DNA of 64,000 nucleotides from Camelus dromedarius (lineage: Eukaryota). Position numbers and translations under genes: made by a program. Location of the stretch: NCBI RefSeq assembly GCF_036321535.1, contig NC_087442.1:13144001-13208000 (forward strand), written 5' to 3'. Position 1 is the stretch's first letter. Every line of letters starts with the position of its first letter. The notes below the pieces were generated by a model. That model saw only the letters and a list, made by a program, of their open reading frames with translations, was not told the origin of the DNA and ran no database searches. Positions 2,128 through 57,138 of the stretch are shown piece by piece.

Positions 2128-2994
2128 CTTGGATCAAGGCAAGAATACAACAAAGAGCCTATTACATCCAACTCAGTTTTTGAGTGGTTTCAGGGAATGG
2201 CTAGTTGAGGGTCAAAAAAAAAAAAAAAATCTGCAGAAAGCTGTTAAAAATCTATCATGGGCTTCATGTGGAATATACCCATAGAAAATTTAAGATTAGT
2301 AGGTACTAGGGACTCAAAAAATGTTTTATGTTCCATAGAAATGACCTGGCTCCTAAGGGCCATTGTGTGACCTGAGAAGTTTGGGAGCTTGGTCTATACA
2401 GACTGAGAGTGCCAAGGCTCCGTGCCACATTCTAGTCCTCTGCCCTTAATTCAAGTCCTTAAACATGCTTCACCCTGGGTCTGCCCTCCTTGCACCTTTT
2501 CCATGCTAATGAAGTCTAACTTCCTTATAATTCTGAATCTGCACTGCCAAGCTAACTGTATATACAACATGCACACCTATAGTGCAGATTAAGCAAGAAT
2601 ATACTAGAATGTGTCTGCTCTGAAAAATTAAGTTTGGAAAACAAAAAGTTAAACAAAGGTAAACCAGTTTTACTGAAGGGACTTCTCAGAGCCCTTAATT
2701 TGCCAATACATACTGAAAAAGCTCTAACAATTACTGGTAACTAAAATTATTTGCCCATAAAGTACTTTTTTCCCAAGACACACTAAGTGTAGAAAAGCAA
2801 TAACCTCTGAACATACTGGTTCCAATTTCTTACTCTGGCTCATAAGCATATTCTTTCTGAACTACCCATATAATCAGGGGAAAAAAGTTATACACACACA
2901 AATGTGTCCAAGTTACCAGATGCAAGTTCACACCACTAGTATTCCAAGTCTAAACCACAAAGGTAGTTCCACATCCTCCTATGGACCTCAGTAC

Positions 2995-3186
2995 CTCCTC
3001 CTGGATCGCTCTCTGCTCCTGTCTCTAGAACTGTGCCCACTTCTCTGGTGGCTGCGGCTGCGACTACGGCTGCTGGAGCGGGATCTGTGGCGATGGCGTT
3101 TCTCCCGAGATTTGGATCGAGTTCTCCTTTTCCGTTCCCGTGACATGGAGCGAGACCGATGTCTGCGATGCTCTCTGGACCGAGAT
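2995..3186 (-). CDS. LUC7L2: LUC7L2 exon 9 (192 nt, RS domain)
   Basis: TTTTTTGTAG acceptor and GAG|GTACTG donor. Encodes (R)SRSREHRRHRSRSMSRERKRRTRSKSREKRHRHRSRSSSRSRSRSHQRSGHSSRDRSRERSRR in frame with exon 8. Confidence 0.97.
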
Positions 3187-4377
3187 CTACAAAAAATATT
3201 TCATTTAGTTTTTAGCTTTGTTGGCACTACATTTCTCATTGACTAAAGCCCCTTCTTTAAGAGAAACTATCCCTCAGGAGCTTTACTTAAAATGCTGATT
3301 CTATTTCAAATCAGCTAAATCTATATTAAAATAAATTGCTAGTATATTAAATAAATACTAGAAATTCAAAACAAAAATAAAATACTAGTTCTCAGAGGTC
3401 AATCAGTATTGTATAAATTTACATCAGGAATATTTTTAGACATGAAAGACACAATCTATACCACTACTACATGCCAGGGATAGGATTATCTAGTTGCTTC
3501 ATGAACTTAATTTCATTTAAATTTCTAAGATTCTTAGTACACTTTAGAAACAAAGTGTTGTACCTGATGAACATGGACAGGAGGGAGGAGACGCATGAGA
3601 AGAATATTATTTAGCGTAAGTTACTCTCTGAATTAGAAAGCTTATATGACCACCAAAATAAGTTTAAACACCCACAATATGCCTAGTCACAGTGTAATCA
3701 AAACACAGTTAAGACAGTTCCCTATTTTTTTACAAAAAGTATTTACAAGTACATAGGAGTACAGAGAAGGAAAAACACTTCTGTAGCCTTCACTGTGTCA
3801 CAAAATTAACTAGTGTGTGTGGCGAGGGTGGGGGTGGCATGTGCGGAGGAGAGAAACAATGGGGAAGAAAGCTATGAACTTTGTTAAGGGCCTCTTTAAG
3901 AGTGATGAGAACATTCTAAACTGGATTTTGTCAATTGTGCAACTTTAAACTTACTGAAAAGCATTGACTTACACAGTTAAAATAGGTGAACTTAGGGTAT
4001 ATAAATCTCAGTAAGGCTCTTAAAAATTTTTAATTCTCTTTGTCAAATTATGAGAAAACATCTCATTTTTTAAAGTTTAAAAGCACATTAATTCAGGTGA
4101 TATAATTTATAAATTGAGTTTATTTTCAAAAGATTATTTTGTTAAATGAAGTTTAAGAACAGTCAGCTTATATCAACAATGCTTCAAAGAAAAGCATATT
4201 GTGGACCTAGGATCAACCACAGTTAAATAGAGTATTTCCACAATTTAAAATATTTCTGAAAAGAAATAGGAAAAAGACAGTATCAATTCATTCAAGATTT
4301 ATCAAATGGTAACTTATCACTCATTTTGACCTATTATAATCAATCTATTTCTTCCAATGCATAATTTCATCCCTAGA

Positions 4378-5230
4378 CTATTCATTAATTCAAAAACATT
4401 TACTGGGTACCTACTGTACTGTTCTAGGTACTAGGGAGACTGAGCAGCAAATAAAGCAAAGTCCTTAACTTCATGGAGCTTATACTCCAGAAAGAGGTCT
4501 ATATAGATATGTAGGCAAAAAATACAGGTCAGGCAGTAAAGAAATGATGTATTAGGAAAGGTAAAAATGGAAAGAGAAATGAGGCGGTCATTTTTTATAC
4601 AGAATAGGCAGGAAAGGCTTTTCTTTTCTTTTCCTTTTTTTTGGCTTTTCTTTAAAAATAGCATTTAAGCAAAGACAAAATGAAGTAAGGAAATGAGCTA
4701 ATCAGCCAACTGAGAAGACTGCTTCAGGTAAAGGAAATACAGACGCAAAGGCCCTGAGGTGGGAAAAAGTTCAGCCTGTCAAAGGAATAGAAGAGACATG
4801 TCTGGCTGTAATGAAACAAGGACGACGGGTAACATCAGGAGTCTATCAAGCAGGATGACCAAGTACTTTGTCATTCAAACCAAGATGTTCTTAACACTGA
4901 AATATTCAGAGGGAAAGGGGGAGCTATTAATAAATATGCTGAGACAAAAAATAAACTGTAACTAACTGTCTGAGGGCAGACGGATCACTCTACTTAAAAG
5001 CCATGGGGAGGATTTCAACTCCTGTGAGTGAACAGAGTACGTTTGGAGGGTTTGAGGAGAGGACAGATACAACTTATTTCACTTTTTAAAGAAATCATTC
5101 TGGCTGATGTGTACAAAACAGACTGAGGTGAAGAAGGGAAGTAGGCAAAAACAATCAAGAGACTGGTTAAGAGGCTACTGTAATAGTGAGGTGATAAGTG
5201 GCTTGGCCCAGAGTAGCAGAAATGAAATCT
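4378..5230 (-). mobile_element. L2 LINE fragment
   Basis: Starts with the reverse complement of the L2 3' terminus (ATTCATTAATTCAAAAACATTTACTGGGTACCTACTGT), then degenerate L2 body. Confidence 0.7.
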
Positions 5231-6367
5231 CTGGCATGAGTATCTAAAGATGTTCTACGTACAAATGGGTTAAATATGTCTTCAACAAAGGGACCAGCTT
5301 GCATGAATCAACCAGTAAAAAAGAATAGTATCATCATGTAATGTTTCCACTTCTCATCCTGGATTGAGAAACAACAATATAAATTAGTTTACACAATTGA
5401 TCCTGTTTATTAATGTCTTAGTCTTTGGTGTTTTAAGCAGAAATACCACTGAAAGACTCTAAAAAGTACTAAGGGACATGTAACAGAACATAAAGTTTTT
5501 CCTTCATAACAATAAATGCTCTAGTTTACAGGGAAAAAGTTCTTGGGAAATAGTTACTTTTTAGAGTCAAGGGTACTCAGAAGGTTTCAAAAAGATGATG
5601 TGATCTGAAAAACAGGAATGGCAGGATCTGAAAACAGTGAGAAAGGGCATTCTGGGGAGGAATGGATCCATGAGAAAGGCTCAAGGACAGAAATGAGAAT
5701 GGCACACGAAGAATTAAGAATGATAAAGAATACCATGTCTTATCACCTCAGGAAAAATTACTAAAAACTAGTAAAAACTGTATTAAAAAAAAAAAAAAGG
5801 CTTCTAAAAGCTCACAAACATTAGTGCCAAAAGTCAAAAGTTATCTTCCTCCTCCTCTTTTACACTGTACTCCTCCTCACTGTACAAAGGGAGAAGCAGT
5901 AAAGTCAAAGTCAGTATCAGGTGCAAACTAAACATTTTAGTTTCCCTCAATAACTCATCATGAATCCCTCACTCAGAATGTATCCAACTATTTAAACTAG
6001 TTATATTTTCAGCCTCTTAGAATGTGTTTCTTACGAATCATCCAAATTGATTTAAAAAAATAAATCCTGTCACATATTTACTCTTAGCTTCTAAGGAAGA
6101 TTTTAATGAAATACTCTGAAATATTTTTAGCTTTCTCTGTAACTCCAGGGCACTGCATATGATTTTACTCTGATAAAACTAAATTGTAGCCCATAAGTAT
6201 CTGCAGACCAATTTCTTCTCAAATGATGTTGCACAAGTGTGAACTACAAAAGAATTTAGAGTACTAATCTGTTAATTCTCATTCACTTTTAAAAGATACT
6301 TAATCTATAAAAACTACCTTTGAAAAATACAGCTTCACCACTTAAACTTATTGTGTATAATACCTAC

Positions 6368-6397
6368 CTTTTGGGATTCTTGCTATGTGATCGAGAC
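6368..6397 (-). CDS. LUC7L2: LUC7L2 exon 8 (30 nt, symmetric phase 2-2)
   Basis: TTCTTTTTTTAG acceptor and AAG|GTAGGT donor. Encodes SRSHSKNPK, also seen at the end of ORF 6364..6549. Confidence 0.95.
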
Positions 6398-6967
6398 CTA
6401 AAAAAAGAATATCTATTTTTAGAAAAGTAACTATAAATAAGGAAGAAGTACAATGTGCTAATTACATTCTTCCTCATTTCTAATTTTGTATTAATTTTAT
6501 AAATATAAGGCGTGTATGTACACACACGAATTTTTCCAAAAGGTACCACAAACTCTGCAGACTTCCCGACCTGGGCGTACCTGTTTAGGATACCCGGCTC
6601 TTAAAAAAGAATATGCTCCTAGGAGACTAACACTCCTATACAGCACAACTCCCTAGTTCTCCAAAAACCACTTCCCAATCTGGAAAAAAATCTGTTATTT
6701 GTATCTTTGTCATTTCTTCTTTTTCTCCGGGAACAGAGTAAAATTTCTAAGCTGACACGCTTATACTTTGGAATTACCACTTCGTACTATAATCCCTAGA
6801 ACACGACTCAATTGTACAATGTTTCTTATTATGACACGTGATACTCTTATATAAAAAGCAATCTTTACACTTACTAGCACACAATTAAAGCTCAATAAAT
6901 AGTGACATCTAATATTATGGTTACTAGGAAGTCACAGGATTGGTTTTGTATGTGTGTGTGGAGAATA

Positions 6968-7200
6968 TGTAGCATGGTTGAAGCACGGCTTTGGATTCAG
7001 CCTGATGCAAGCTGTAACCATTTCCACCACTATCTGTGTGGCCTGGACAGATTATGTATCTTCCTTCAGTTTGTCATTTGCAAAAGAGGGACAGTAACAG
7101 AAATTTCACAGGAGGGTTCTAAGTATTAGATGAATTAATATAGGTAAATTCTTAGCACAATGGGCACATAAGCAGCATCCAGTAAGTGACAGTAATTTGT
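6968..7200 (+). mobile_element. MIR SINE
   Basis: Near full length: TAGCATGGTTGAAGCACGGCTTTGGA...CTTCAGTTTGTCATTTGCAAAAGAGGG...TTAGCACAATG. Confidence 0.7.
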
Positions 7201-8573
7201 ATCATTATTCTTTTCATTACCATAGTTGTAATCCCATTTGTGTGTAATTCTGTACTCACTTGTAATTTCCTCATCTTCCATACTTAGGCACAGTATCTCC
7301 TCAAGTTCAAAGACTAAAAAAATGTTTTAAATGTTTCTGAAGCAGTGTTAACATTTTATAATAATCAATGTTAAAAGAAATTTGCCACTTGGCATTAAAG
7401 AGTAAGATAAGATGTACTTTCTCATCATCTACAGATGTGAAAATGTAGTCCTGCAAAGAATGTTTTCTCTCATTTGACTATTACCTCAGTTGAATCATTT
7501 ATATTAGTGGCACTATATTCTGAATTTTAACTTAAACTGAGATTTCTAATGCCATTCATACTGTCTAAAACATTACAATATTGGGCAATATTCTCACAGA
7601 AACTTAGTATACACAAAAGAGATAAAGCTCTGAAGTTACTAAAATACAGCACTTCCTCTAAACAGGAACATGTCCAATATGTAACTTTGTTTTGTTTTTG
7701 TCATTACAGTGCAAAATCATTACAAGCCATGTAACAAATGAAGTCAGTTTAAACATCTTCAAATAGACTGAGTATATGTAACATGCTCAAAGCTTAGAGG
7801 AAGTCGACATGACCTAGTCACATTATTATCCAGGGTTTTAATTAACTGAAGCACAACACTGGCCGAAGAGAAGGTATTTAAATTTCAGAGATGTGTAATA
7901 CAATTAAGGGAACACTAAGTTAGAACTGCAGGTAAATCTTTTATGGCAAACTCATCCATCTGAAAATTGTTGAAGTTATAAATATGATGCTTTATGTAAT
8001 ATTTTGCTGCAAATGGGTAAAAGTGACTCAACACGTAGACATTCTAAATAAGAATCGTATGATTTTATCAACTAATCAGTATAAAAAGAATTGTTCACAT
8101 TTAGCTATTAACTTAATAAAATTTTATAGTTTATAGCTCCTAAACTGAAGAAATATAGAATCAAAGTACAATGTAAAATAATCAATGAAACAAACAAATA
8201 ACCACCCAAACCTTTTATCAACAAGTACACAATATATCAATAAAACAGTTCTACACCAGCCTGGTACAAAACTAGCCCATTGTGAAAATCAGAGGGCCAG
8301 ACAGGGGCTTTATTATAAATCTTACTAAACAGATAGATACGACACACTCTTTACTCCCTCTTCCACACATTCTGAAGGAAATCTTCTTGACTTGACTTAA
8401 ATGGCCATAAGTTAACATAGTTGAATAAACATTATTTCATATGTCAGTATTTTAAAGAAATTTCCCATGTCCAGATTTATTAACATCTAAAATCTTGTAT
8501 CAATCACATCTCTTTTCAGAACTGGGGATATTCAACCTCAGATACTTGGACTACTCAGTTAATTACTCCATAC

Positions 8574-8665
8574 CTCCTCAGCTTCTCCCTTTCTTCTCTC
8601 TCCCTTTCTTCTCTTCTTTTCAGGCGTTCCTGGTTTCTTTTCTCCTGCTTCTCAGCTACAACTCT
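8574..8665 (-). CDS. LUC7L2: LUC7L2 exon 7 (92 nt, Arg/Glu-rich)
   Basis: TTTTTTAAG acceptor and GAG|GTATGG donor. Encodes RVVAEKQEKRNQERLKRREEREREEREKLR. Confidence 0.96.
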
Positions 8666-10148
8666 CTTAAAAAACAATGACAGTTCAAATAATAATAAAT
8701 GAGGAGAAGTATGGGCCCATTCTTAATGAGCACTATCCTAAACTTCACCATATCTAACATCAAAAGCTTTTTAATAACAATTAAATTTGAAGTTTTGCCA
8801 AGTATAATCATTAAGCTTACAAGACTGGTTTCCAAAATCTCCCCTTCTTTTTATGTACAATTTCATATTTCTCTATGACTTCTTAGTATTTCAGAATCAC
8901 TTTTATAAGACTTTTCTCCTCTTAAGGTCTTCTAAATTCTATAAAAATGAATTTTTTAAAAAAACCATCAATCATTATAAACTCCTACAAGTTTCCAAGC
9001 TCTCCGATTTCCAATATGGAAATGTCTTCTGTCAATTTCTACTTACAATCCTGATGCTGCTGCTTTTAAAGATACCGGTGAAATGCTAAACAGTTCTGTT
9101 GCTAGGTCTGTATTTGCGAAGGTTTCCAATTACCATTTTTTTTGAGTTTTAAATTAGAGCTCAATAACCATTCACTATAGTGAAACTCAACTTGTCATTT
9201 CAAAAAACTTACCCAGGATCATCCTAGGTACTCAGAATACTGAGAAGAGCTCACGGTTAACTACAAACACGGAGATGTCCCTAAGTGATTTTGATTCCAC
9301 ATTATTTTAAGTATCAAACTATGGTCTTGGGTTAATTTCAGTGGTAACTACACAAAAAGTCACTACCCAATGTTTGCCATCTTTGAGCAAGTCCTCAATT
9401 CATGACAAAATACTACAGTCCCACAATTTTTTAAAAAACTAGCCACATCAGACTGTTGAAAAGTAAACTGGTCATATCCACTGACTTCTGCTTATGTTTA
9501 CCTCCTTAGAAATATCCTCCCTCTTTTTTTGTTTGCTCATCTTCTCAAAAGAAATCAGCAGACGAGTAAGAGTTGTGTTGCCTTTTTCACAACAGCCTAC
9601 ATACTTAAGTGACAGTGACTGTCCTTTTTAAAAAAATAAATCCTTTCTGAAATGGGGGCAGAAGAAAAAATTAGAGGTACCACAAGTATGCTATTTAGTG
9701 AACTGCAAAATACTCCAAATAAATGCTGGAGCTTTTAAAAAATCTTCCTTAAAAGTAAATATTATTACATTAATGTTACTGATTTTATTAAAAAGAAAAC
9801 ATCATCGGAAATTTTAGGGGACTTGTATGAATTATTTTAGAACCCAGTTAGCAAGACTCCTAATTCAACATCGTATCTAACACAAAATTACTACCTTCCA
9901 GAATAAGAGAAATAGTACTTTAAAGTCTGTTTCCCAGATATCATCCATTAAACAAGATGGTATTTCTAGTTACAATCCTACACTATTCAATATTAACTAT
10001 TAACAGAATCACAGTTAAGAACAGTCTTAATCACAATTAAGAATACTATACAAAAAACCCCCCAACTATACAAAAAGACAACTTACACATATCAAAAGAA
10101 TGAGTGGCTAAACTGGACAAAGGGGGAGGCCTTAATTTACCAATGTAC

Positions 10149-10325
10149 CTTTAATTCTTCAAGCTTCTCTCTTATTTCAATAAATCCCAGGTGCAGTTTA
10201 CCCCCAAAATGATCAGCCAGCCGCCTGTCATTATCATGAAGCCCTAAATAGGCAGAGCAGACTTCACAGACTCGAAGTTTCTGCTGCTGGAAACTGGAAG
10301 CTGGCATAGAATTCCGATAAACTTC
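10149..10325 (-). CDS. LUC7L2: LUC7L2 exon 6 (177 nt, second zinc finger, U1-type C2H2)
   Basis: TTTAG acceptor and AAG|GTACAT donor. Encodes EVYRNSMPASSFQQQKLRVCEVCSAYLGLHDNDRRLADHFGGKLHLGFIEIREKLEELK. Confidence 0.98.
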
Positions 10326-10899
10326 CTAAACGAAAGTGAGAAAAATAATGTTCACATAAACCACATTAAAATCATACAATTAAACAAAATACACTATGTT
10401 TATACCAAAAATGTTTCTAATCAACACACAAAAAGCATGGTGATTTTGTCATGAAAATTACAGACTCCTCATTCCCCCTATTCTCTGTCCTCAGGACCTC
10501 TCTACTAGAAATGAATGATCAGAGCCTTAAATACCTTTTGCCAGGAACCACCATAACAATTCTAACATGATATGGAACACGACTTTCTGAAAAAGTTTTC
10601 TCAGTGTTCTACAACGTTTTCTATAATTCTTGTTAAAAATGCAGCAACCCCAAAACTATACATCAGTGAAAGGTCAAGGAAGCAGAATCGCCCATGATTG
10701 CAGAAAAGGAATGTATGTCTTCCATACTATTACAGCTTCCTTTCGCTGCCTTCTTCCCCACAGATCATTCCCCACCCTCTGGAACTGTGGACAGGGCATA
10801 CAAAGACTTCCTATTAAAAGGAGTAGCTCTGTAAGACAAAAGATGAAAGGTGCCTTACTGAGATTAAGATGCCTCATACTCATTTTATTTATATTAAGT

Positions 10900-12245
10900 T
10901 CATTAATGAAATAATAAATATTAGTGGCTTTGTGTATCCACCGCACCCTGTCTTTTGTATGAAGCAGCAGCATGCCCAATCAAAAACATGACATTTCCAA
11001 GCTTCCAGGCAGCTTTCGTTAAGGAGACACATGCAGACATTACTGGATAGAATCTATAAAAAAGTTCTATAAAAGGGAGTCAGTAGATTCAGATGAAGAT
11101 CATCAGTGGCTGCTATAACATGTGGATCAAAAAGCAATGGGAAATAGACACTTACAGTGTCAATACCAAGATATTAATTATAAAGGGAAACACAGTAACT
11201 TCACAGTAGGAAAACAGGCAACATTACCAGAAGTGGACAAGCTACTAACAGCCTTCTGACAGGATTTAACATCACTTCAGTGGTATTCCTCTCAAATATC
11301 TAACCAGGAAGAAGTATTAGACAAACCCAAAGTGAAGGACATTTTACAGGATAACTGATCTATACTTTTCAAAACTGTCAAGATCACGTCAGACAAAGAC
11401 TGAGGTACCAGATTAAAGGGGACTAGAGAGACATACAACTAAATGCAACACGTGATCCTGGACTGGATGTTAAACAAAAAAAATTTCCTTTCTTTTTTGA
11501 AAAAGAACATTATTAGGACAAATGGCAAAATTTGAACAGTCTTCAGATTAACTATTAGTATTGTATCAGTGTTACTTCTTGATTCAGGTAATTCTACTGT
11601 GGTTATATAATAAAATATTGTTTTTAAAAAATACACATTGAAGTATTCAGGGATAAAAAGGCATCATATCTATAGCTGATTGTTAAACAGTTCAAATACA
11701 CACATACAGGAGGAGAATGATATAGCAAATGTGGTAAAATGTTAACATTTGAGGAATCTGGGTGGAGGATATAGGGAAATTTTTCATATAATGTTTTAAC
11801 TTTTCTTGAAATATTTCAAAATTAAAAATTTTTAAAAAGGGAACCCCAAAGCATGACACACAAAGCAAGTCAACTCAATTTTTATGCCTTGTTATTCCTC
11901 CTCTTTCTACTTGTGCACAAAGGAAAGGCTTTAGGCTTAGCAGACACATGACTAACACAAAGAGATAAGCATAAAGACAAAGTCACATAGTAAGGATGGC
12001 TTTTTTTTTTTTTTTTTAATATGCCACAATTTTTATTGCAATGTCGCCATTTTTGTGAGGTTGGGGAGTTTGATCTCAAAAACAAAGCTAGAAGCAGGCT
12101 GTGTGCTAGATGGCATCATGAAGCTGCTGGGCCAGCCCCAGACTTTCTAAACTCAAGTTATTTATTAAATGAGATAAATAAAACCTTTCTTTGGTTAAGT
12201 CATTAATAAGTTAAATTTTCTATTATGTACAATTGAACACAATCT
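10900..12245 (+). mobile_element. MLT1-type LTR split by an L1MC 3' end (about 11140-11835) and a poly(A) retrocopy
   Basis: MLT1-like 5' half about 10900-11130 (CATTTCCAAGCTTCC...) and 3' half about 11890-12245 (AGGATGGC...CATCATGAAGCTGCTG...AATAAAACC...TTAAGTCA). Between them lies an L1MC-like 3'UTR (AACTAAATGCAACACGTGATCCTGGACTGGAT). Confidence 0.55.
12001..12083 (-). pseudogene. Short polyadenylated retrocopy fragment, source unidentified
   Basis: A17 tail with AATAAA (12037-12032) 14 nt upstream. Interrupts an MLT1-like LTR. No clear TSD. Confidence 0.5.
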
Positions 12246-12889
12246 AGAATAGGCAAGTACATTTTGTAATGCACTGTCCCAAGTAGAAGTCAATGGATGA
12301 TAAAACATAACAGGCTAATGATGTCAAGCTACAGGGTAATACCAGTAAAACTCCAAGTATATATATACATGAAGTTTTATGAAAACTGCAATATATGGAA
12401 GGAAAATAATGCTCGCTGGATTCATTACCCAAGAGTTTTCTGGGGAAATAAACTAGCTATAAAATATTTTGCATTTTAAAATTCATAGTATTCATTTTCT
12501 GGATTGGTATTAACTACATTTAAAGAATCATAATATTAAGACATTAAAACGATCAAGAATAGCTTCTTGATAATATCTTTCCCCAGCCCAGAACCTGTAA
12601 TCTTGTGTCTTCATACTTCCAGAGTGGGTTTCTTGTAGCTAGCATATAGCTAAGTCTTGTTTAAAAAAAAAAAAAAATCCAGTCTCACAATCTCTGCTTT
12701 TTAATTGGATTGCTGAGACTATTTACATTTAATATAATTATTGGTACACTGGGTTTAGATCTACCATCCTATTTATTTTCTGTTTGTTCCCTTTCTTCTG
12801 CCTTTCTTTTGGATTAAGTATTCTTTTTAGGATTCCATTTTGTTTCTACTATTAGTTACACCTCTTTCCCCCTCCAGTGGTTTCGCTTA

Positions 12890-13655
12890 TGAAAAAAGCT
12901 AGAGAAGCTTTTATTACTAGCAGACGAAGGAGATTTCAAAACAAGGGACATCACTAGGGACAAAGAAGGACACTTCAAAGTAATAAAGAGTTAAATTAAT
13001 CGAAAGATAATAACAATCCTAAATATATACTAACCTAATAACAGAGCTTCAAAATATATGATCAAAAACTGACAAGATGGAAAGCATAAACAAACAAATC
13101 CACAATTCTAGTTAGACACTTCAACACTCCTCTCAGTGAGTAGTAGAACAAGGAGGCAGAAAATCATTAGGATATAGAAGACTCGAACAAATCTATCAAC
13201 TATCTTGACTCAATTGACATTTTATTTATAGAACACTCCATTTAACAAGGCAGAGTATCATTGTTTTTAAATGTAGATGGAACATTCACCAAGGCAGACC
13301 TTATGCACGGACACAAAACAAGTACTGATATACTTAAGAGAACTGAAATCACACACACGTTCTCTGACCACAACAGAAATAAATTAGTATCAGTAACAGA
13401 AAAATATCTGGAAAACCTCCAAATATAGAAAAACTAAACACATGCCTAAATAACCCACAGGTCAAAAAAAAAAAAAAAAAAACCACAAGCAATATTAGTA
13501 AATATTTAGAAATGAATGAAAATAAAAACACATATGAAAATCTGTGAGAAGCAGCTACAGTCATGCTTAGAAGAAAACTTACAGCATTTAATGGTCTAAA
13601 ATCAATGATCTAAGCTTCTGCCTTAAGAGGCTAGAGAATAACAAATCAAACCCAA
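12890..13655 (+). mobile_element. Degraded L1 ORF2 endonuclease region
   Basis: Old L1 ORF2 motifs (GGAACATTCACCAAGGCAGACC, TTCTCTGACCACAACAGAAATAAATTAG) with many frameshifts. Confidence 0.75.
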
Positions 13656-14167
13656 GTGTGATACAGTTAGGCTCAATGGAGATTATGGCAAAAGGGGAGA
13701 GTACAATCTCATCTGAAGGCATTCAATTTTCTAATAAACACTGGCGGAGGGGGACAAAAGGTAACTTTGTCTGCAGGTACCAGATTTTGACCTGTACGTG
13801 GAGAAAGAACGAGAGGGAGTTCCCAGGGTGTTAGCAGACTATGCTAAGGTGGGAAGACAAGGGAGAACACTGCAGCTGCGTGGGGATGGAGTAGGGATGG
13901 CATCGCAGTGACCACGTGTATGAAGACTGCACTGGGTCTACTTACATGTGTGACTGCTGTGTATGACTTGCTTAGTTTACTTCATTTACCGTTATAAATT
14001 TCAACAGATCAATGACTCTAAATTCCAAAAAATCCCACTAATTTTGATATACAACCCATCAGTATGACACAGACTAATATTTTAAATTGGTTTAAATAGT
14101 AATAACTTTTCAATAATTTCCAGTCAAATATGCATTCTTTAGGAATATAGCTGCTAAAGTAAGTTAC

Positions 14168-14311
14168 CTCTGCTTCTCTTTTTTTTGCCCGTGCCTTCTC
14201 TACTTCATCCATTACTTTCTGGGATTCCTCCACATTCCCTTCAGCTCCTAGCTGTTCTACCTTAGCCAACAATTTACCAATTTCTTCATTTAACTCATGA
14301 ACACGTTCTGC
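14168..14311 (-). CDS. LUC7L2: LUC7L2 exon 5 (144 nt, coiled coil)
   Basis: TTTCTTTCTAG acceptor and GAG|GTAACT donor. Encodes AERVHELNEEIGKLLAKVEQLGAEGNVEESQKVMDEVEKARAKKREAE. Confidence 0.98.
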
Positions 14312-15649
14312 CTAGAAAGAAACAGAAAAGATCATGAATAAAAAGCAGAATGTACCAAAGTTTAAAAAATTTCATAAATGCTAGAAAAGACAGTTATCTA
14401 AGGCAATATGAGTGTAAATAATGCTTTCTGAGCACATCGTAAGTGAACCAGTGGGACATAAGGATGCTGAGTCTGCCTGCCTTTACTTCAGTAAGGTCAA
14501 GGATATAACTGATCTCAATATAACTATTACTCTTCAACCTCTGCTTTGACAGTGTATTCCAAGTATAAAATACATTTTCTTCCACAATCTGGCACTCTGT
14601 ACCTTTCCAAACCATCTCTTTCTGTTCTCCGACTCTGCAACAAATCTACAGTTATAGTTTCCCAAACTTACCCTGTTTTCTGCCTCTGTGACTTTGCACA
14701 CACTGCTCCCTCTTCCTGGGATGTCATCCGTTACCTCCCTTACCTGCCTCATGTATGTCTATCCATTCAGTAAGATCCAACTGAAGAGTCTATTCTGTGA
14801 AGCATTCTTGAACAATCACCACATCTGACCCTCACTTAAGACACTTAAGCAGAGAGAGCCACCCCTCCTTTGTGCCACCTTTGTATTTTTATGACAGTTA
14901 TTTTATATGTATCACACCACTTTAAAGACTTCCCATTCTTGTATTTCCAATGTCCAAGAAATAGCATAGGCTCAAATATGAGTAAAAGGAATGAACTGGT
15001 GGATACCCTTCAAAGCAAATAGATAGCTTTAGAGTCCCTCTAGCTTACTGTCAATTACTAGCTGTGGAACTGTAACCAGATTACATGACCTGAATCTACT
15101 TCCTCATCTGAGAAGTAGGGGTAATACCTATCTCACGAAGTTGTGAGAGTGAGAAAATACACCTTGTACATGCACTGTGCAGCACACGACTGATTTTCAG
15201 TAGTCTAACATGGCACCCCTTCTCCCTCAGTCCATGTCTTTCCATTGGGACTAATTCTTGCCTTAGGATTTGATGTCTCCTCACCACCATCACCCTGGGA
15301 ATCTAGTTCATTCCTATTGTTTTAATGGCACATTAACATATACTGTCTTTTTTTTTTTTTTTGGTATTTATATTATATTTTTATTGATGTATAGTCAGTT
15401 TACAATGTTGTATCCATTTCTGGTGTACTACACAGTCTTTATTTTGGCTACAAAATAAGTATTCAGCCTGTGTAGCCAATTATATTAGCAAAGAAGGTTT
15501 TAATTTGATCTGGACATCCAGTCCCGACAAAGTAGTGTGCCAATAATCTTTACTTCTTAAATTGTCTTCAATCTGAGGTAAATTTGTCCCTCAAATAAAT
15601 TCCCAACTCTATTATCATTATCCTAACTCTTTAATAAAATTCTTCTACT

Positions 15650-16078
15650 ACTACCACAGACTGATTGCATTAATGCTCAAAGCTCTTCACCCTTTCTATA
15701 TCCATGCCCTTTGCTACGTAACTGAGAACCATATGCACTGACTGAACTTGGCCATGTAATTGGCTTGGCTTTGGTTAATAGGACGGTAGCAAGTATGACA
15801 TATGGAAAGGCTTAAAAAGTGCTTGCATGGCTGGGCTTGATGCTTCAGCACCTCTGATACCACCATGAGAACCTGGCCAGGCTAGCCTTCTGGGCACAGT
15901 TCAGCAGCCTCCAGCTGACTGGAAGATATGTACATGAGTCCAGCTGAAACAGGAATAACTACCTAGTCAAGCTTAGCCTAAATCACTGACTACAGACTCA
16001 TGGGCTAAATAAATAATATTTTAAATTTGAGGAAGCCTATTAAACAGCACTCTTGTAGTTATGGATAACCAATACAAT
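15650..16078 (+). mobile_element. MLT1 (MaLR) solo LTR
   Basis: CTTGGCCATGTAATTGGCTTGGCTTTGG...CACCATGAGAA...ATGGATAACCAATACA terminus. Confidence 0.65.
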
Positions 16079-16663
16079 GCTGTGTAAACCACGACAGCTG
16101 GGGTCTAGCCAGCACCTGTGGATCTCTTTCAACCATGAGATATGAGATCCCTTGTATGTTAGGATGCTCATCTTTATAGTCTTAGAACTTTCCAAAAAAA
16201 GTTGGTTAAAAGTAACCCTCTCCTCAAACAAGGGAATTCACTTCCCTTTGTACACACATATCTGAGCACTATATTTAATGCTGTCACCTAAACTCTATTG
16301 GGTTAACTCTTCATCTCCATTCTGCATTTTCATAAAATGTGCTAGACTATATTGAATGGTATGAAATATTATGAAGTAGTAAGTTATCAAATCAATAAGT
16401 CAATGTATGGACTTTTGAATTCTGATTAGAGCAAACCAACTCTACATAGGAAAAAGAAACACATTCTGGATATTACATAATTATTGTTACTTTTAGGAAT
16501 ATGATTTTGTGGTTATGTTTTAAAGATGAAATGATTATGACATCTAAAATCTGCTTTTAAAATAATGAAACAGGAGGAAACTGATGGCTTTGAATCCACT
16601 GGGGTTCACTGTACTTTTTGCATTTAAATTCACAATAAAACATTTTAAAATAGTAATGAGTAA

Positions 16664-16783
16664 GCGGGGAGGGTATAGCTTAGTGGTAGAGTGCCTACCC
16701 AGCATGCACAAGGTCCTGGGTTCAATCCCCAGCACCTCCACTAAAAAAATAAATAACTTAATAATCACCCCCCCCCACCAAAG
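16664..16783 (+). mobile_element. tRNA-Ala-derived SINE (camelid Vic-1-like), long form
   Basis: GGGGAGGGTATAGCTTAGTGGTAGAGTGC...GGTTCAATCCCCAGCACCTCCA head, then A-rich/CCCCC tail. Confidence 0.85.
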
Positions 16784-16856
16784 AAGTGAGTAAAGCAGAA
16801 CACTTAAAACACAACATTAAAAAAAATGAGTAATCTACTTGGAAAATGGGCATAAG

Positions 16857-16986
16857 NNNNNNNNNNNNNNNNNNNNNNNNNNNNNNNNNNNNNNNNNNNN
16901 NNNNNNNNNNNNNNNNNNNNNNNNNNNNNNNNNNNNNNNNNNNNNNNNNNNNNNNNNNNNNNNNNNNNNNNNNNNNNNNNNNNNNN
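16857..16986. other. Assembly gap
   Basis: 130 N. Confidence 1.
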
Positions 16987-16987
16987 G

Positions 16988-17826
16988 AATGATTAAAATG
17001 AAACATAGTGACACCATCAAATGTTGGCATGGATGTGAAACTGGATCACTGACTGACCACTGCTGGCAGGAATATAAAAGTGGTATAGCCACTCTCTGGA
17101 AAAAAGTTTGGCACTTGCTTTCAAAACTAAAAATAGACTTTCTAAGTGACCCAGCAACTGCATTCTTGGGCATTTACCCCAGAGAAATAAAAATTTATGT
17201 CCATACAAAAATCAGTACACAAATGTTTATTGCAGCTTTACTGGTATTAGCTAATAACAGAAATGTTCTTCAATGTGTAGATGGTTTAACTGTGGTATAT
17301 CCATACAATGAAATACTACTTAGAAATAAAAAGGAATGAATTATTGATACAATTTGTACAATCTCAAGAAAGTTGTGCTGAGTGAAAAAAGCCAATCTCA
17401 AAAAGGATACATACTGCATGATTCCATTTATATAATATTCAATGAAATAACATGATTATAGAGATGAAAAACAGATTAGTGGCAGCCAGGGGCTTGGAAA
17501 AAGAGGGAACTGGTGTGGCTATAAAGGCGTAACATGAAGGAGTACTGTGGTGATGCTACACAGTTAGGTAACTAAATTACAGTAGTAGTTACCCAAGTTA
17601 CACGTGTGATAAAACTGCATAGAGCCACACACACACACACACACGCATAACTGGTGAAATCTGAATGAAATGTAAGGATTAGTCCAATATCAATTTCTTG
17701 GCTTTAATACTGTACTAAGGTTGTCTAAGAAGTTAACATAAGGGAGGCTAGAGTTAAAGTACATAAAATTTCCCTATATATGTCTTTGCAACCTCCTATG
17801 AATGTAATTATTTCAAAATAAAAAGT
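16988..17826 (+). mobile_element. L1MB-like 3' ORF2 end and 3'UTR
   Basis: ACCCAGCAACTGCATTCTTGGGCATTTACCCCAGAGAAAT, GTGGTATATCCATACAATGAAATACTAC. Explains ORF 16839..17339. Contains a (CA)n run near 17625. Confidence 0.85.
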
Positions 17827-17887
17827 TAAAATAGAAGTAGTGAAGTAAAACTATTCTTTGTACTAATGAAATGATTAAAAATCTTAC

Positions 17888-17998
17888 CTTTGCTGCCACT
17901 TCAGCACTAATCTCTTCTTGAGTTTCTGCTAACCTTTTCTTAGCCACTTCTGTTCTTCGATCACAGTCTGCAATGAATGACTGCAGATGATCCATAGC
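17888..17998 (-). CDS. LUC7L2: LUC7L2 exon 4 (111 nt)
   Basis: TTTGTAG acceptor and AAG|GTAAGA donor. Encodes AMDHLQSFIADCDRRTEVAKKRLAETQEEISAEVAAK. Confidence 0.98.
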
Positions 17999-18882
17999 CT
18001 ACAAAGTTTGATTAAATGACAATTACTGCAGGAAAAATCAACTTTATTAAAAAAAATCTTTACTCAAAAATTATGCTTATGAGTAAAAAAGATAACAAAA
18101 GTAGGTTCAATGATAAATTGACTCATTATTCATAATCTATCAAACTGACAATAAACAAATAATAAACACAAACATATATATAATTCCCAGGAATGGTAAG
18201 GAAACTGCCACTCTCATACTCTGCTGAAGGAAGCACAAACCAGCATAACCTTAATAAAAAGACAACATGGTAACTGTTATTGAAAGCCTTAAAACTGTCC
18301 CCAAACTTAGTAACTTTACTCCTAGAAATCTATTAGGAAAGTAATCATAGGTGTATGAAAGAATATTCAAAGCTATCCTTCACATTGTTATCTTTAATGG
18401 TGAAAAGTTGTAAATAGCCTAAATATCCAAGTAACACATAGAAAATTTGATCTGCAGCTATTTTAAAGAAGGTGTTAGTACAACACTTAAGGACATGATT
18501 CATTTGTACATAAAAAGTTAGACTGTTATATGTAATAAAACCCCAATTTATAAAATAAAGCATAGAAAAAAATGGAAGAGCATACGTAAAATGTTAATTA
18601 TTGCTAAATATACAGATAACTTTTGTTTTACTGTTTTTCAAATTTTTTAAAGAAAATGTCATAATCAGGGAAACTTGCCCTTTTCTCAAAACAACGAGAA
18701 TTTCAGTAGTATCTACATTGCAAAAATCCAGTTCAATATTTATATAAATGATATTTATCAGGCATATATTAATACATCTGTAATAATAGTTCATTTAAAA
18801 GTAAACTTCTACGTTTTATTCCCAAACTAAGCAACTTAGACTTTTATATTTTAATTAAAGCTAATTTAAAACACAAATGTTT

Positions 18883-19027
18883 AATGGTAGAGTGCCTGCC
18901 GAGCATACTTGAGGTCCTGGGTTCAATCCTCAGTACCTCCATTAAAAAGATAAACTTTAAAAACCTAATTACCTCCCCCACAAAATAAAACAAACAAAAA
19001 AATTATTAAAAAATTATTTTAAAAAAT
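18883..19027 (+). mobile_element. tRNA-Ala-derived SINE, 5'-truncated
   Basis: Starts at AATGGTAGAGTGCC. Flanked by TSD CACAAATGTTT (18872-18882 and 19028-19038). Confidence 0.85.
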
Positions 19028-20746
19028 CACAAATGTTTTAAAATGTAACTTTATTCAACATGTATCAAATTCTAAAAATGGTTGGTTAACCCGTGAGTTT
19101 CATGAAAGTGCAAAGTAAAAGCTTTTATCTGTAATGGCAAAGAAATAGCTATTTAACTCTTTTATAATTTAAATTTTATCTTTAAACATCACAACAGAAA
19201 TCTATTGAAATTTCCTTTTGGGAAAAGATGAACTAATTCAATAAATAGTATTGGGTCAACTAAGTAGTCATCTGGAAAAAGAAAGAGAGATCCTTAGACC
19301 AGAATAAATTTAAGTTGAATCACATATTTAAATGTGTAAAACGAAGCCACAGAAATACCAGAAGAAACCATGGGAGAGAACTTTGATCACATCAGAAAAG
19401 GGAAAGCCTTTTGAATTAATCCAACAGATTTTTAAAAGATTAATACACAAGACAACTATAAAAATATTTTGCAAGGCTCACAACTACCAAAAGAGAAACA
19501 GAAAAAAAATTGCAACGTATTAGCTGAGAAAGGGGACTAATTTTCATAATATGTAGAGTCAGTACAAATCAATTAGAAAAATACTGACATCCAAGATTGG
19601 CAAATAGCAAATGTACACTGACACTTATATTCCACATTTCATCTATCAAAGCTGCAAAGAAATCTTGACAACAAACTATGTGGCATATGGGAAACAGATC
19701 ATTTCATACATACTAGTGGGAATATAAATTCATAATTCTCATTGGAAGCAACCTGGCAAAATTGCTCTTTGACTGAGTTATTCTATTTGTAGAAACTTAC
19801 TTCGTCGACACTCAATATATAAAAACAAAGCATTATTATACCATGACAGAAAAAGACTGAAAACAACATGAAGACCCATATGCCTACATCTAGGTGGTGA
19901 TGAATTTCTACTGTATTTTATGCTCAGTATATATTAAATCACAACCCAATTACTTCAGGGTCTTTCCCCAAATGCTCCAGTGCCATGTTAAACTCTGTTT
20001 ACATGGATAACTGCATTTGCATTAGCAGAAATTCTTGGAAGTTCAGGGAAGTAGGTGGGGGGAGGGGTCTATTTACCACTTTACCTCCCAAACCAAATAA
20101 AGTGTCTATTATCTTACTGAAAAAAACTCATCATAAGATTTGTGCTCATTAGTATGTTTTATCTAATGCTGACTGGTATGTCTTCTATAAATAAAGTTCC
20201 CTTATTTCCATACCAACAATTCTCATGTTTGTATAAACAATATAAAGTCAAGAGTTTGAGCCCTTTAGATACATAAGTGGTATCTTCTATTTCCTCTAAT
20301 CTCTCTTCTACTAGTTTTACGTAAAAAACAACATTGCCCTTAATATTCTCCCCCTCTATATATGTATTTACAAATATAAAAATAAATATTAATGTAAAAA
20401 TCCAGTAGATCATTAAAGGGCTTTATATACACTAGAAATTAGTTGTTTACATTTGCTTACATTGGTATTTCCTTAAGCACCACTAACTTATTGGGAAGAA
20501 TATGCTTAATTTTCAGAAGAACACGTGAATTACATGACTCTCACACATTTTCTTAAAATATTCATTTTAAGATTTTTAAAAAAATACTGTTGGTCAAGAA
20601 AGCACATAATCTTACTTAATTTAGTATTACCCTTCATATAACCACAAAAAAGATCATCTGCTAACAGCCTTTTCTCATTATGAGACATTAATCCATATTC
20701 AAAATGTTTTACAGATAATCGAACCCATTAAAGCAAAATCACATAC

Positions 20747-20845
20747 ATCAAGTTCAAAGAAAAAATCCTGTTCTTTGGATGCAATTTCATAATCTGCTCT
20801 TAAAGCCAGGTCATGAACTTTCAGACATTCTCCAAGATCCATTCT
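20747..20845 (-). CDS. LUC7L2: LUC7L2 exon 3 (99 nt, second half of CCCH zinc finger 1)
   Basis: TTTTTTCCCCCCCCAG acceptor and GAT|GTATGT donor. Encodes RMDLGECLKVHDLALRADYEIASKEQDFFFELD. Confidence 0.98.
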
Positions 20846-35096: not shown

Positions 35097-35191
35097 AGTT
35101 CCAGACAGGACATCATGGGGGCAACAGTTGAGAAGGTGACTCTTGCACACTCTGTCATCACTGAATTTTATTCGCTGACGAGTAGTGTCTC
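35097..35191 (-). CDS. LUC7L2: LUC7L2 exon 2 (95 nt, first half of CCCH zinc finger 1)
   Basis: CTTTCCTATATTACAG acceptor and ACT|GTACGT donor. Starts in phase 1 and encodes (G)DTTRQRIKFSDDRVCKSHLLNCCPHDVLSGT. Confidence 0.98.
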
Positions 35192-35650: not shown

Positions 35651-35847
35651 NNNNNNNNNNNNNNNNNNNNNNNNNNNNNNNNNNNNNNNNNNNNNNNNNN
35701 NNNNNNNNNNNNNNNNNNNNNNNNNNNNNNNNNNNNNNNNNNNNNNNNNNNNNNNNNNNNNNNNNNNNNNNNNNNNNNNNNNNNNNNNNNNNNNNNNNNN
35801 NNNNNNNNNNNNNNNNNNNNNNNNNNNNNNNNNNNNNNNNNNNNNNN
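35651..35847. other. Assembly gap
   Basis: 197 N. Confidence 1.
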
Positions 35848-36795: not shown

Positions 36796-37023
36796 NNNNN
36801 NNNNNNNNNNNNNNNNNNNNNNNNNNNNNNNNNNNNNNNNNNNNNNNNNNNNNNNNNNNNNNNNNNNNNNNNNNNNNNNNNNNNNNNNNNNNNNNNNNNN
36901 NNNNNNNNNNNNNNNNNNNNNNNNNNNNNNNNNNNNNNNNNNNNNNNNNNNNNNNNNNNNNNNNNNNNNNNNNNNNNNNNNNNNNNNNNNNNNNNNNNNN
37001 NNNNNNNNNNNNNNNNNNNNNNN
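36796..37023. other. Assembly gap
   Basis: 228 N. Confidence 1.
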
Positions 37024-39656: not shown

Positions 39657-39916
39657 NNNNNNNNNNNNNNNNNNNNNNNNNNNNNNNNNNNNNNNNNNNN
39701 NNNNNNNNNNNNNNNNNNNNNNNNNNNNNNNNNNNNNNNNNNNNNNNNNNNNNNNNNNNNNNNNNNNNNNNNNNNNNNNNNNNNNNNNNNNNNNNNNNNN
39801 NNNNNNNNNNNNNNNNNNNNNNNNNNNNNNNNNNNNNNNNNNNNNNNNNNNNNNNNNNNNNNNNNNNNNNNNNNNNNNNNNNNNNNNNNNNNNNNNNNNN
39901 NNNNNNNNNNNNNNNN
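39657..39916. other. Assembly gap
   Basis: 260 N. Confidence 1.
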
Positions 39917-46749: not shown

Positions 46750-47081
46750 NNNNNNNNNNNNNNNNNNNNNNNNNNNNNNNNNNNNNNNNNNNNNNNNNNN
46801 NNNNNNNNNNNNNNNNNNNNNNNNNNNNNNNNNNNNNNNNNNNNNNNNNNNNNNNNNNNNNNNNNNNNNNNNNNNNNNNNNNNNNNNNNNNNNNNNNNNN
46901 NNNNNNNNNNNNNNNNNNNNNNNNNNNNNNNNNNNNNNNNNNNNNNNNNNNNNNNNNNNNNNNNNNNNNNNNNNNNNNNNNNNNNNNNNNNNNNNNNNNN
47001 NNNNNNNNNNNNNNNNNNNNNNNNNNNNNNNNNNNNNNNNNNNNNNNNNNNNNNNNNNNNNNNNNNNNNNNNNNNNNNNNN
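46750..47081. other. Assembly gap
   Basis: 332 N. Confidence 1.
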
Positions 47082-49629: not shown

Positions 49630-50960
49630 CTGGAGGGCGGCGGCGAGGGATGATCTCAAAGCTCAGGGTTAAGGAATTAGTTCTGGGGGCGGATGCTTTA
49701 GCGGTCCGCAGGTACCTGATCAGCGACAAAACAGGCCGCCGACTACGCAAGAGAGACGTGGGCTCTCCCGTCCCAGCCAAGTCAACACTGAATGCTCAAA
49801 CTCTCCCTTCTGCCTCCAGGCCCCGCCTGACCCCATTGGCAGCGGTTCCCGCCAATCCACTCGGTCGCCGCCCCCTAAGCCCGCCTGCCAAGCCTTGATT
49901 GGATGGGACGGGAGCCGGGACCTCGTGTTACCAATCTGGGAGCCCCTTACTCAGCCACACACATAAGCCCAGGTGCGCCCACGGAGCCCCTTCCCCTTGC
50001 CTTCCCAGTCCCTTCCCCCACCCCCAGNNNNNNNNNNNNNNNNNNNNNNNNNNNNNNNNNNNNNNNNNNNNNNNNNNNNNNNNNNNNNNNNNNNNNNNNN
50101 NNNNNNNNNNNNNNNNNNNNNNNNNNNNNNNNNNNNNNNNNNNNNNNNNNNNNNNNNNNNNNNNNNNGGGGGACAAGGGGAAGGGGTGGGGGAGGTGAGA
50201 CGCTGTCTCAGTTGCCGCCGCTGCCTCGAGGCGTGCGAAAAAGGAGCCGGAGGGATTGTAGGAGAGTCCGGGCTGCGCTCCTCACGACGACGCGTACGCG
50301 GAAGGCGGCAGCCCCCGAAAGCGACCCTCGTTCCCTCACTCTCCGTCGGGTTCCTGCGACAGAAGCGATACCAGCTAAGCAAGCTCTCGTCTCCTACACC
50401 ACCACCCGCCAGCAGACGTCAGCCCCCCCTCCAAGCTCTGACGCCGCTCGCCGCCACCGTCGCCGCGACGTGAGCGCGCACGCTCCTCGCGCTTAGTCGT
50501 TTCCCGCGGGGCTCCACCAACTGGCGTCCAACTGTATTTGCCCCGCCCTCCCCGCCCCGCCCCCCCCCCCCCGAGACGGGTTCCACCCTAACGGCTCTCA
50601 GGCGCGTGCACGCGGGTCTCTCCCGCCCCTACCCGCTAGATCTCGCGAGACTCAGCGAACGCCCGAACCCGATCCGCCCCGGGTGCCAAACCTCAAGCTC
50701 CAGGCTGCAGGTCTTCTAGGGCCGCGCCGCACTGTGCTGGCGAACCAGACCCAAGTTAGCCAATGTGCCAGAGGTTAGCCCGAGTCGAAAGTAAGTAGAG
50801 ATCCTGCCCGTCGTTTCCACTGAGGTTAGCAGTCTTAGCTAATCTGGGCGTATTCCTGACGAATACTTACTGACCAACGAAGTCGTTTTCAGGCGCCCGC
50901 CTGAAAATCGTGTAGACTCAACCTTTTTCTCACTGCTGCCCCACCCTCTGCAGGAGTCCG
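49630..50960 (-). promoter_or_regulatory. LUC7L2: LUC7L2 CpG-island promoter and 5'UTR
   Basis: High GC and CpG density, GC boxes near 50540-50570, TCTCGCGAGA at 50641-50650, CCAAT near 50760. Boundaries approximate. Confidence 0.85.
50028..50167 (-). other. LUC7L2: Assembly gap inferred to hide the LUC7L2 start codon, coding part of exon 1 and intron-1 donor
   Basis: The gap sits in the LUC7L2 CpG island between 5'UTR-like sequence (right) and G-rich intron-start-like sequence (left). No exon encoding the expected MSAQAQMRAMLDQLMGTSRD N-terminus is visible elsewhere. Position is inferred, not seen. Confidence 0.75.
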
Positions 50961-52640: not shown

Positions 52641-53804
52641 TTGCATTTGTGTTGGTCTGCTAGTAAGGAAGTCTTCTATTTTTGTTGGTTTGAAAAGATC
52701 TTTATTTTGCCTTTCCTAATTCTAGATGAGTATTTCCCTTGGGCATAGAATTCTAAGTTGTAAGTTACTTTCTTTCGGCACATAGATTCTGTCATTCATT
52801 AACAGAATTAAAAGTTTGTTTTCTTTGTAAATTTTTTTTTAATTTTTAAAGTTTAGTAACACTTACCTGAAAAAACAAAAACCTCTGTGAATATGTGTAA
52901 GTGTACATTCTAGCAATGATATCCATTCCTTAAGGAATAAGGTCTCATAAGGAAACAGGAACTTACATAAAAGTAGGGTTAAATCTATACATGCAAGAAA
53001 CTAGGTAATTAAAAATTAGAATAGGTACAAGTAACATAACATTTTGCTAGTCATCCAGAGCAGACAACTATTCATCTTACTGTAATTAATAAACTAAATA
53101 TAGTAAATAATTAAAGACTATACAGTAAAGTTTTGTATTACAGTTATTCTTGGGGCATCAGTGCATACCTACTATCAAATTTTATAAACAGGATTCCTGT
53201 TAATTTAAATGTAGATCAAAAAATTCAAATTCTGTGTAAATTATTTATCTTTTAGTTAGGTGAATTAAAAATTTATGTTACAAACAGAATGTGCCTTGGA
53301 TTAGCCTGCCTTTAGTTCACAACCTCACAGCCTTCTTCCTCCCACCACACACATTATCTTATATGTGAACCTTTTGTTCTTATCATTATGTTCATATTTG
53401 TATCTATAACAGTTACCCAGACAGGGGACAAGCAAAGTACTAATAACTCAATACTTTAGAGCCGGAAACAATTCTAGTTAAAATGCATAAACATTTGAAG
53501 TTTATGGAGAAGAGAAATAGCAAGAGCCAAACCTGAACTGAGTGAACTAGTTGACTGGTCTTTAAAACAGGGGAATTAAAAGCAATAAGCATCTATAAAC
53601 CAAGCCAAGAGAAAAGGAAGGAATGGTTAATAGTGTCAAAAACGCTCCCTAGAGATCAGCAAGATAAGGAATAAACCATTGGGTTTAGTGGCCTGAAGAT
53701 CACTTGTAAACTTGCAAGGCAGTTCTAGTTAAGAGGGAGAAACCAGACTGCAGTGGATTGAGAATGAGTGGCAGTGAAAAATGCAGTAGATGTATACATG
53801 AAAC

Positions 53805-56859: not shown

Positions 56860-56865
56860 TTTAAT
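56860..56865 (-). terminator. FMC1: Probable FMC1 polyadenylation signal ATTAAA
   Basis: ATTAAA about 70 nt after the stop codon, followed by a U/GU-rich downstream element (GGGGTTTTCTTTGTAATTTTGTTG). Confidence 0.7.
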
Positions 56866-56934: not shown

Positions 56935-57138
56935 TCATGGCTCCCAGCCCTTCCCTCCAGGCTGCTGGGGCAACTTGAGACCCACTAAGCCAGCCGACTC
57001 CTCCACTGAGCGCTCACCCTTGCCATGAAATTCCTGATGAAGGGCCACGTGTGCTCGGATGCTCCGGAGGAGGCAGAGATAGGTGGCAGCCTGGAAATGA
57101 AGTTCATGCTGGGCTCTGCACAACTTCTCACTGGTGAC
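56935..57138 (-). CDS. FMC1: FMC1 (C7orf55) exon 2 CDS, 67 aa plus stop
   Basis: CTTCTCTAG acceptor. Encodes VTSEKLCRAQHELHFQAATYLCLLRSIRAHVALHQEFHGKGERSVEESAGLVGLKLPQQPGGKGWEP*, TGA at 56937-56935. Confidence 0.97.
   Translation of the reverse strand, partial: VTSEKLCRAQHELHFQAATYLCLLRSIRAHVALHQEFHGKGERSVEESAGLVGLKLPQQPGGKGWEP

Follow-up and report, generated by a model that had tools for sequence, protein, structure and literature searches.

An internal donor in camelid FMC1 and the known FMC1-LUC7L2 read-through gene

A splice donor inside the last exon of FMC1 can be joined in frame to exon 2 of the neighbouring LUC7L2 gene in a 64,000-nucleotide stretch of the Camelus dromedarius genome (contig NC_087442.1, forward-strand positions 13,144,001 to 13,208,000), referred to here as the window. 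Judged from its sequence, the predicted chimera is the camelid orthologue of the FMC1-LUC7L2 conjoined (read-through) gene, and the feature is of a kind already known. We consider it probable, at about 0.7, that this orthologue is a minor by-product, made at low level when FMC1 termination leaks, and we do not read it as a demonstrated adaptation. The camelid case in itself adds little, as the human gene is annotated and a camel model already exists.

Structure of the locus

FMC1 and LUC7L2 form a tandem on the minus strand, with FMC1 directly upstream. The coding part of FMC1 exon 1 (60103-59966, minus strand; 138 nt, 46 codons, MAALGSPARTW...AFRAHR) starts with the ATG at 60103-60101 and ends at the donor CGG|GTACGA. 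Exon 2 (57138-56935, minus strand) follows the acceptor ctctag|GTCACC and reads VTSEK...HGKGERS...GWEP up to the TGA stop at 56937-56935. Inside exon 2 lies the internal 5' splice site AGG|GTGAGC (57012-57020, minus strand, covering positions -3 to +6), in the context CAT GGC AAG G|GT GAG CGC, with 57018 as the final exon base and the GT at 57017-57016 supplied by bases 2 and 3 of the Gly87 codon GGT. The segment from the exon 2 acceptor to this donor, exon 2a (57018-57138, minus strand; 121 nt), encodes residues 47-86 and the first base of Gly87, and the remainder, exon 2b (56935-57017, minus strand), encodes residues 87-113 (GERSVEES...GGKGWEP) together with the stop and is absent from the predicted fusion. 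The internal donor matches the consensus at 7 of 9 positions and is as strong as the adjacent constitutive donors, which by the same count reach 6/9 (FMC1 exon 1) and 7/9 (LUC7L2 exon 2). The likely FMC1 poly(A) signal, an ATTAAA at 56860-56865 (minus strand) read from the sequence, is located 152 nt 3' of the internal donor GT, and as a variant hexamer it would fit leaky FMC1 termination.

Two other sites in FMC1 exon 2 can be noted. A CCA|GTGAGA at 57128-57136 (minus strand) lies 7 nt into the exon, in phase 1, with a 6/9 match, and a TTA|GTGGGT at 56982-56990 (minus strand) follows ...ESAGL, the point at which gene models of Plecturocebus (P0121) and Cricetulus (P0122) exit FMC1.

LUC7L2 exon 2 (35098-35191, minus strand; 94 nt, phase 1 at its start) is bounded by the acceptor tattacag|GAGACACT and the donor GGAAC|GTACGT. 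The frame carries on from this exon through the later coding exons (2994-20845, minus strand), placed by tblastn at about 20845-20735, 18004-17885, 14311-14114, 10325-10149 and 3188-2994, extents whose splice boundaries are inexact, as far as about 2994; the final LUC7L2 exon or exons fall beyond the window. Upstream, the LUC7L2 CpG island and 5' UTR occupy about 50700-50170 (minus strand). The coding part of exon 1 and its donor are masked by an unfilled run of N at 50028-50167 (minus strand), an exon that is skipped in the predicted fusion.

The 138 nt of exon 1 and the 121 nt of exon 2a sum to 259 nt, or 86 codons plus one base, which gives phase 1 and equals the phase of LUC7L2 exon 2. The join from 57018 to 35191 translates without a stop as ...HQEFHGKGDTTRQRIKFSDDRVCKSHLLNCCPHDVLSG, and the predicted chimera reads ...HQEFHGK-G-DTTRQRIKFSDD..., in short form ...HQEFHGK-G-DTTRQR. 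The donor at 57018/57017, the sum of 259, the phase and the frame into LUC7L2 exon 2 had all been given in a preliminary description of this DNA, and each was confirmed to the base. The total length of 458 residues that it proposed for a LUC7L2 of 392 residues rests on homologues, as the last LUC7L2 exon or exons lie outside the window, and is that of the human protein and the other 458-residue homologues.

Several minor sequence features accompany the locus. Six runs of N of 130-332 bases (16857-16986, 35651-35847, 36796-37023, 39657-39916, 46750-47081 and 50028-50167) all fall inside or adjoin LUC7L2, and none has been filled. Within the LUC7L2 promoter CpG island, a run of about 12 G followed by GC-rich GGGGCGGGG repeats (about 50552-50569, minus strand) is Sp1-like or G-quadruplex-prone. 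Between the two genes, on the sense strand, ttttgttttttcag|GTAAGT at 52861-52875 (minus strand) sets an acceptor directly against a perfect donor, an arrangement that resembles a recursive splice site and would be relevant only to read-through RNA.

Relatives of the predicted fusion

A search for the exon 2a region inside longer proteins recovered fusion proteins carrying a LUC7 domain, and a cluster look-up showed that the group contains the human 'FMC1-LUC7L2 readthrough protein' NP_001231513.1 (P0256) of 458 residues, also present as BAH12639.1, which we take to be a cDNA-derived entry for the human fusion protein. The correspondence to the annotated human read-through that had been suggested for the camelid junction is borne out, as HGKGDTTRQR is identical in the window's predicted chimera and in NP_001231513.1. 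The same junction occurs in 458-residue models of pilot whale, aardvark and mole, and in models that differ from these in length (cats, goat, yak and the marsupial Dromiciops). The human gene (formerly C7orf55-LUC7L2; GeneID 100996928; UniProt Q96HJ9 isoform 2) shares with the camelid locus the gene order, the donor after Lys86 plus one base, the acceptor of LUC7L2 exon 2 and the length logic of 86 + 372. The two differ in a few FMC1 residues, such as Ala75 in the camelid, and the camelid fusion is predicted from DNA. The human locus has been tabulated as a coding read-through gene (PMC5793191), and UniProt FMC1 isoform 2 has been linked to peptides common to LUC7L2 (PMC13434801). Otherwise the locus appears in the literature in lists of differentially expressed genes, and a literature search found no functional study of the fusion.

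A second known relative of the predicted camelid protein is a genome-annotation model, not a transcript, found for Camelus ferus. This model, EPY80755.1 ('Putative RNA-binding protein Luc7-like 2 isoform 10-like protein', 312 residues), is near-identical to the window chimera through the junction and LUC7L2 exons 2-6. A single residue of FMC1 exon 1 differs (Leu for Arg12), and the model is truncated and ends in residues that do not belong to LUC7L2. Conjoined genes usually arise by splicing from a donor within the terminal exon of the upstream gene to exon 2 of the downstream gene, whose first exon is left out. The conjoined genes tabulated alongside the human locus (ATP5J2-PTCD1, URGCP-MRPS24 and RBM14-RBM4; PMC5793191) show no structural difference from FMC1-LUC7L2. 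The N-terminus encoded by LUC7L2 exon 1 is also replaced in a 398-residue LUC7L2 'isoform X2' (Camelus, Mus, bats and hedgehog) that splices into exon 2 before DTTRQR; unlike the FMC1 fusion, this isoform uses an alternative first exon within the LUC7L2 gene. A search of the unmasked part of the window did not recover the first exon of isoform X2 from camel, which may lie inside a run of N other than that at 50028-50167.

A search of representative proteins returned no 458-residue fusion, presumably because these proteins are clustered under LUC7L2. When partial fusion reading frames were sought in the protein collection, no hit of 52-164 residues spanned both sides of the junction, and no relative of FMC1 was found among metagenome contigs (host DNA).

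It should be noted that annotated fusions do not all reflect a usable splice site. The model of the eagle Morphnus joins HGKG to DTTRQR, yet the DNA reads AAA GGG GAG and would require a GG-AG intron (L022, about 1446-1460). The Gnomon models of kiwi and Gopherus read KGER-DTTRQR and require a poor GC donor, GAGC|GCTC (kiwi, L019, about 2637-2650, with exon 2 at 16430; Gopherus, L020, about 2799-2812, with exon 2 at 25490). Each of the three appears to have been made by projecting the mammalian fusion protein onto a genome without the donor. Two reptile Gnomon models, from Chrysemys and Rhineura, carry the mammalian-type junction as protein models. The use of fusion models as proof of deep conservation was rejected in view of the GG-AG intron needed in Morphnus and the GC donor needed in kiwi and Gopherus, and with bird and turtle models of this kind included, tallies of annotated fusions overstate conservation. 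The human protein may have been projected onto many other species, whose fusion models would then not be independent evidence.

Distribution of the internal donor

Codons 86-88 of FMC1 were compared in fetched DNA, with therians represented by a small sample of four lineages (camelid, bat, squirrels and koala). The codons read AAG GGT GAG in the camelid window and in bat, AGG GGT GAG in five squirrel-family genomes and AAG GGT GAA in koala; the GT is present in all of these, with the G at +5 lost in koala. No GT is found in platypus (CGA GGG GAG), sea turtles (AAA GGA GAG), Gopherus, kiwi and Morphnus (AAA GGG GAG) or ducks (CGG or AGG followed by GGG GAG). The GT is thus confined to therians in this sample, and a single synonymous base, the third of Gly87, decides its presence. 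Gene models imply the GT in primates, rodents, ruminants, cetaceans, carnivores, pangolin, mole, aardvark and a second marsupial. Bat, squirrel and duck share the tandem order of FMC1 followed by LUC7L2. The platypus assembly instead has LUC7L2 exon 1 (L018, 1988-2050, minus strand) head-to-head with FMC1 (10001-12470, plus strand), 8 kb upstream, an arrangement that makes read-through impossible there.

Some variation in gene structure was seen along the way. The FMC1 gene of a catshark spans 327 nt for 108 residues and is apparently intronless. FMC1 of duck (L009-L017) and Morphnus (L022) ends three residues early, at ...GGKG*, and in duck the FMC1 intron is tiny and the start of LUC7L2 is only about 1.6 kb downstream.

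Use of the internal donor is implied by gene models of human, Pan, Macaca, rat, Mus spicilegus, sheep and pangolin. In sheep, rat, Mus spicilegus, Pan, Macaca and pangolin, FMC1 stops exactly at the internal donor and continues into unrelated, lineage-specific exons, which gives the donor at least six alternative partners of this type, most of them with early stops. These tails cannot come from projection of the human fusion protein and so provide indirect support for use of the donor. A promiscuous donor in read-through RNA would give such varied downstream partners. The tails of the primate and mouse isoforms did not map to the window, which indicates that those exons are lineage-specific. 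The tail of the sheep FMC1 isoform (P0102) maps to 50350-50285 of the window, behind a candidate alternative acceptor, gtcgcag|G (50353-50360, minus strand, cut at 50354/50353), that is located in the LUC7L2 CpG island or 5' UTR and corresponds to the acceptor of the sheep isoform. A one-base difference from sheep shifts the camelid frame after this acceptor, and the tail is non-conserved and ends in a stop.

Selection or codon choice

Most of the donor is dictated by the protein, as the peptide K-G-E-R fixes positions -1, +1, +3 and +4. Free to vary are just +2 and +5, which are the third bases of the Gly87 and Glu88 codons, and +6, with which the Arg89 codon opens. The preliminary description had taken the preservation of donor and frame in a camelid as a sign of selection, while granting that coding constraint on FMC1 might also account for it, and had proposed that synonymous positions be compared across vertebrates. 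That comparison did not uphold the claim: the third base of Gly87 is T in all sampled therians, yet the same invariance is seen at 14 of the exon's 30 four-fold sites when koala is included (at 23 of 32 among camelid, bat and squirrel), and the Gly87 base is not conserved better than this background. Gly99 has the same pattern, with T in therians and another base elsewhere. When synonymous codons were resampled for the exon 2 peptide, 19% of draws had a donor of at least 7/9 at the K-G-E site and 34% had a phase-1 donor anywhere in the exon, and the prior for a phase match is 1 in 3. From these frequencies and the background-level conservation, both the presence of the donor in the camelid and its frame are expected without selection, and synonymous change has removed the motif from platypus, birds and turtles. 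The GT may be under weak constraint, given that the therian sample comprises four lineages.

Predicted product

Modelled with AlphaFold2, the fusion of Camelus ferus (P0246) has predicted helices at residues 7-23, 33-44 and 54-85; mean pLDDT in blocks of 10 residues is 62-82 over residues 1-80, and the model is unreliable past residue 85. According to this model, the join at 86/87 would keep all three predicted helices of the LYRM core and lose the conserved tail of 27 residues. The Pfam family PF13233 has a weak precomputed match on FMC1, and none was reported for the fusion at E <= 0.01. The LUC7 domain (PF03194) is matched in the fusion with an E value of about 1e-74, starting at profile position 21 of 246, and the fusion is without the first 20 positions of the domain. 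The loss of the LUC7 N-terminal helix noted in the preliminary description is consistent with this match, and yeast Luc7 uses that helix and ZnF1 to bind the Sm ring (PMC11251525).

Human FMC1 acts in a ternary complex with ATPAF2 and NDUFAB1 and keeps an acetylated Ala2 (PMC13434801). Since Ala2 is retained, no presequence is cleaved, and a mitochondrial presequence as the targeting element is unsupported for human FMC1. The RS-rich LUC7L2 tail of the fusion would favour the nucleus, and it is doubtful that a core of 86 residues would carry an RS-tailed protein of 458 residues into mitochondria.

Discussion

The events that would yield the camelid fusion as a by-product of leaky termination can be set out in order. 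A fraction of polymerases would pass the FMC1 poly(A) site unterminated and travel about 22 kb, crossing the promoter, first exon and first intron of LUC7L2. Exon 2a, with its 121 nt, could then be defined as an internal exon. Since a first exon has no acceptor, the nearest constitutive acceptor beyond the donor would be that of LUC7L2 exon 2, and the two would pair. This splice would remove the FMC1 tail, its stop and poly(A) site and LUC7L2 exon 1. The resulting protein would consist of residues 1-86 of FMC1, with all three predicted helices of the LYRM core, followed by LUC7L2 minus its first 20 residues. The donor would exist because the conserved K-G-E-R fixes most of its positions and therians happen to use GGT for Gly87.

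A functional isoform maintained by selection, in which the LYRM core replaces the Sm-ring helix and produces either a LUC7L2 uncoupled from U1 or a link between ATP-synthase assembly and splicing, would draw on the GT being kept in every therian lineage sampled as DNA and implied by models in more, on a predicted junction at the end of helix 3 (residue 85/86) that would retain the whole fold, and on a long reading frame that runs to the normal LUC7L2 stop and should escape nonsense-mediated decay. The helix that would be exchanged does bind the Sm ring in yeast (PMC11251525). However, conservation of the T is at background (14/30 four-fold sites invariant), koala has lost the G at +5 (GAA), and the monotreme, birds and turtles are without the GT though FMC1 and LUC7L2 are equally conserved there. 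A matching phase arises by chance one time in three, and synonymous resampling placed a donor here in 19% of draws. FMC1 lacks a cleavable presequence, the fusion bears an RS-rich nuclear tail, and the literature search turned up no functional paper. Further, replacement of the LUC7L2 N-terminus on exon 2 is not special to FMC1, as the 398-residue isoform X2 already does so in camels. Selection on the fusion is, on this balance, improbable. A more specific form of the idea, which we regard as the least probable of all, would have the chimera as a therian-specific translated isoform under selection, born with the GGT codon of Gly87 in the therian stem, in which exchange of the Sm-ring-binding helix for an acyl-ACP-binding LYRM core would alter U1 association or confer partial mitochondrial localisation, and so couple ATP-synthase biogenesis to splicing control of the balance between glycolysis and OXPHOS.

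The motif might instead act at the RNA level on FMC1 itself, with U1 snRNP damping 3'-end formation or diverting transcripts to unproductive isoforms, of which the fusion would be one outcome among several. U1 bound in a terminal exon is known to inhibit polyadenylation nearby, a principle that is established in general, and in the camelid the donor is 152 nt upstream of the ATTAAA; the at least six lineage-specific partner exons, mostly with early stops, would also be accommodated. Set against this are the lack of excess conservation of the donor and the species without a GT, which make FMC1 normally, and we consider such a role as improbable as selection on the fusion. Slightly less remote, although still unlikely, is that the motif is silent in camelids, mere codons for Lys-Gly-Glu, and that the Camelus ferus fusion model is a merge made by gene prediction. 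EPY80755.1 is of ab initio style, truncated and with an end that is not LUC7L2, the three sauropsid models checked against DNA are splice-inconsistent or have poor GC donors and illustrate that such models can arise without transcripts, and no junction-spanning fragment of 52-164 residues was present in the protein collection. Yet the 9-mer, the length of exon 2a and the acceptor are shared with isoforms of sheep, rat, pangolin and Pan that cannot be projected from the human fusion, the human fusion also has the accession BAH12639.1, which is presumably cDNA-derived, and the donor equals the adjacent constitutive donors in strength.

LUC7L2 loss shifts cells towards OXPHOS. Should the fusion be functional, it would be a physical link between an ATP-synthase assembly factor and a splicing factor whose loss favours OXPHOS, and it is in any case a thought-provoking coincidence that the partner of an ATP-synthase assembly factor should be a U1-associated factor tied to the OXPHOS/glycolysis balance. 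The fusion is nearly invisible to tryptic proteomics: as read from the sequence, full tryptic digestion yields GDTTR as the sole fusion-specific peptide, and standard proteomics would consequently miss the protein. The dependence of the donor on one synonymous base offers a clean handle, as a change from GGT to GGA would abolish the fusion and leave the FMC1 protein untouched.
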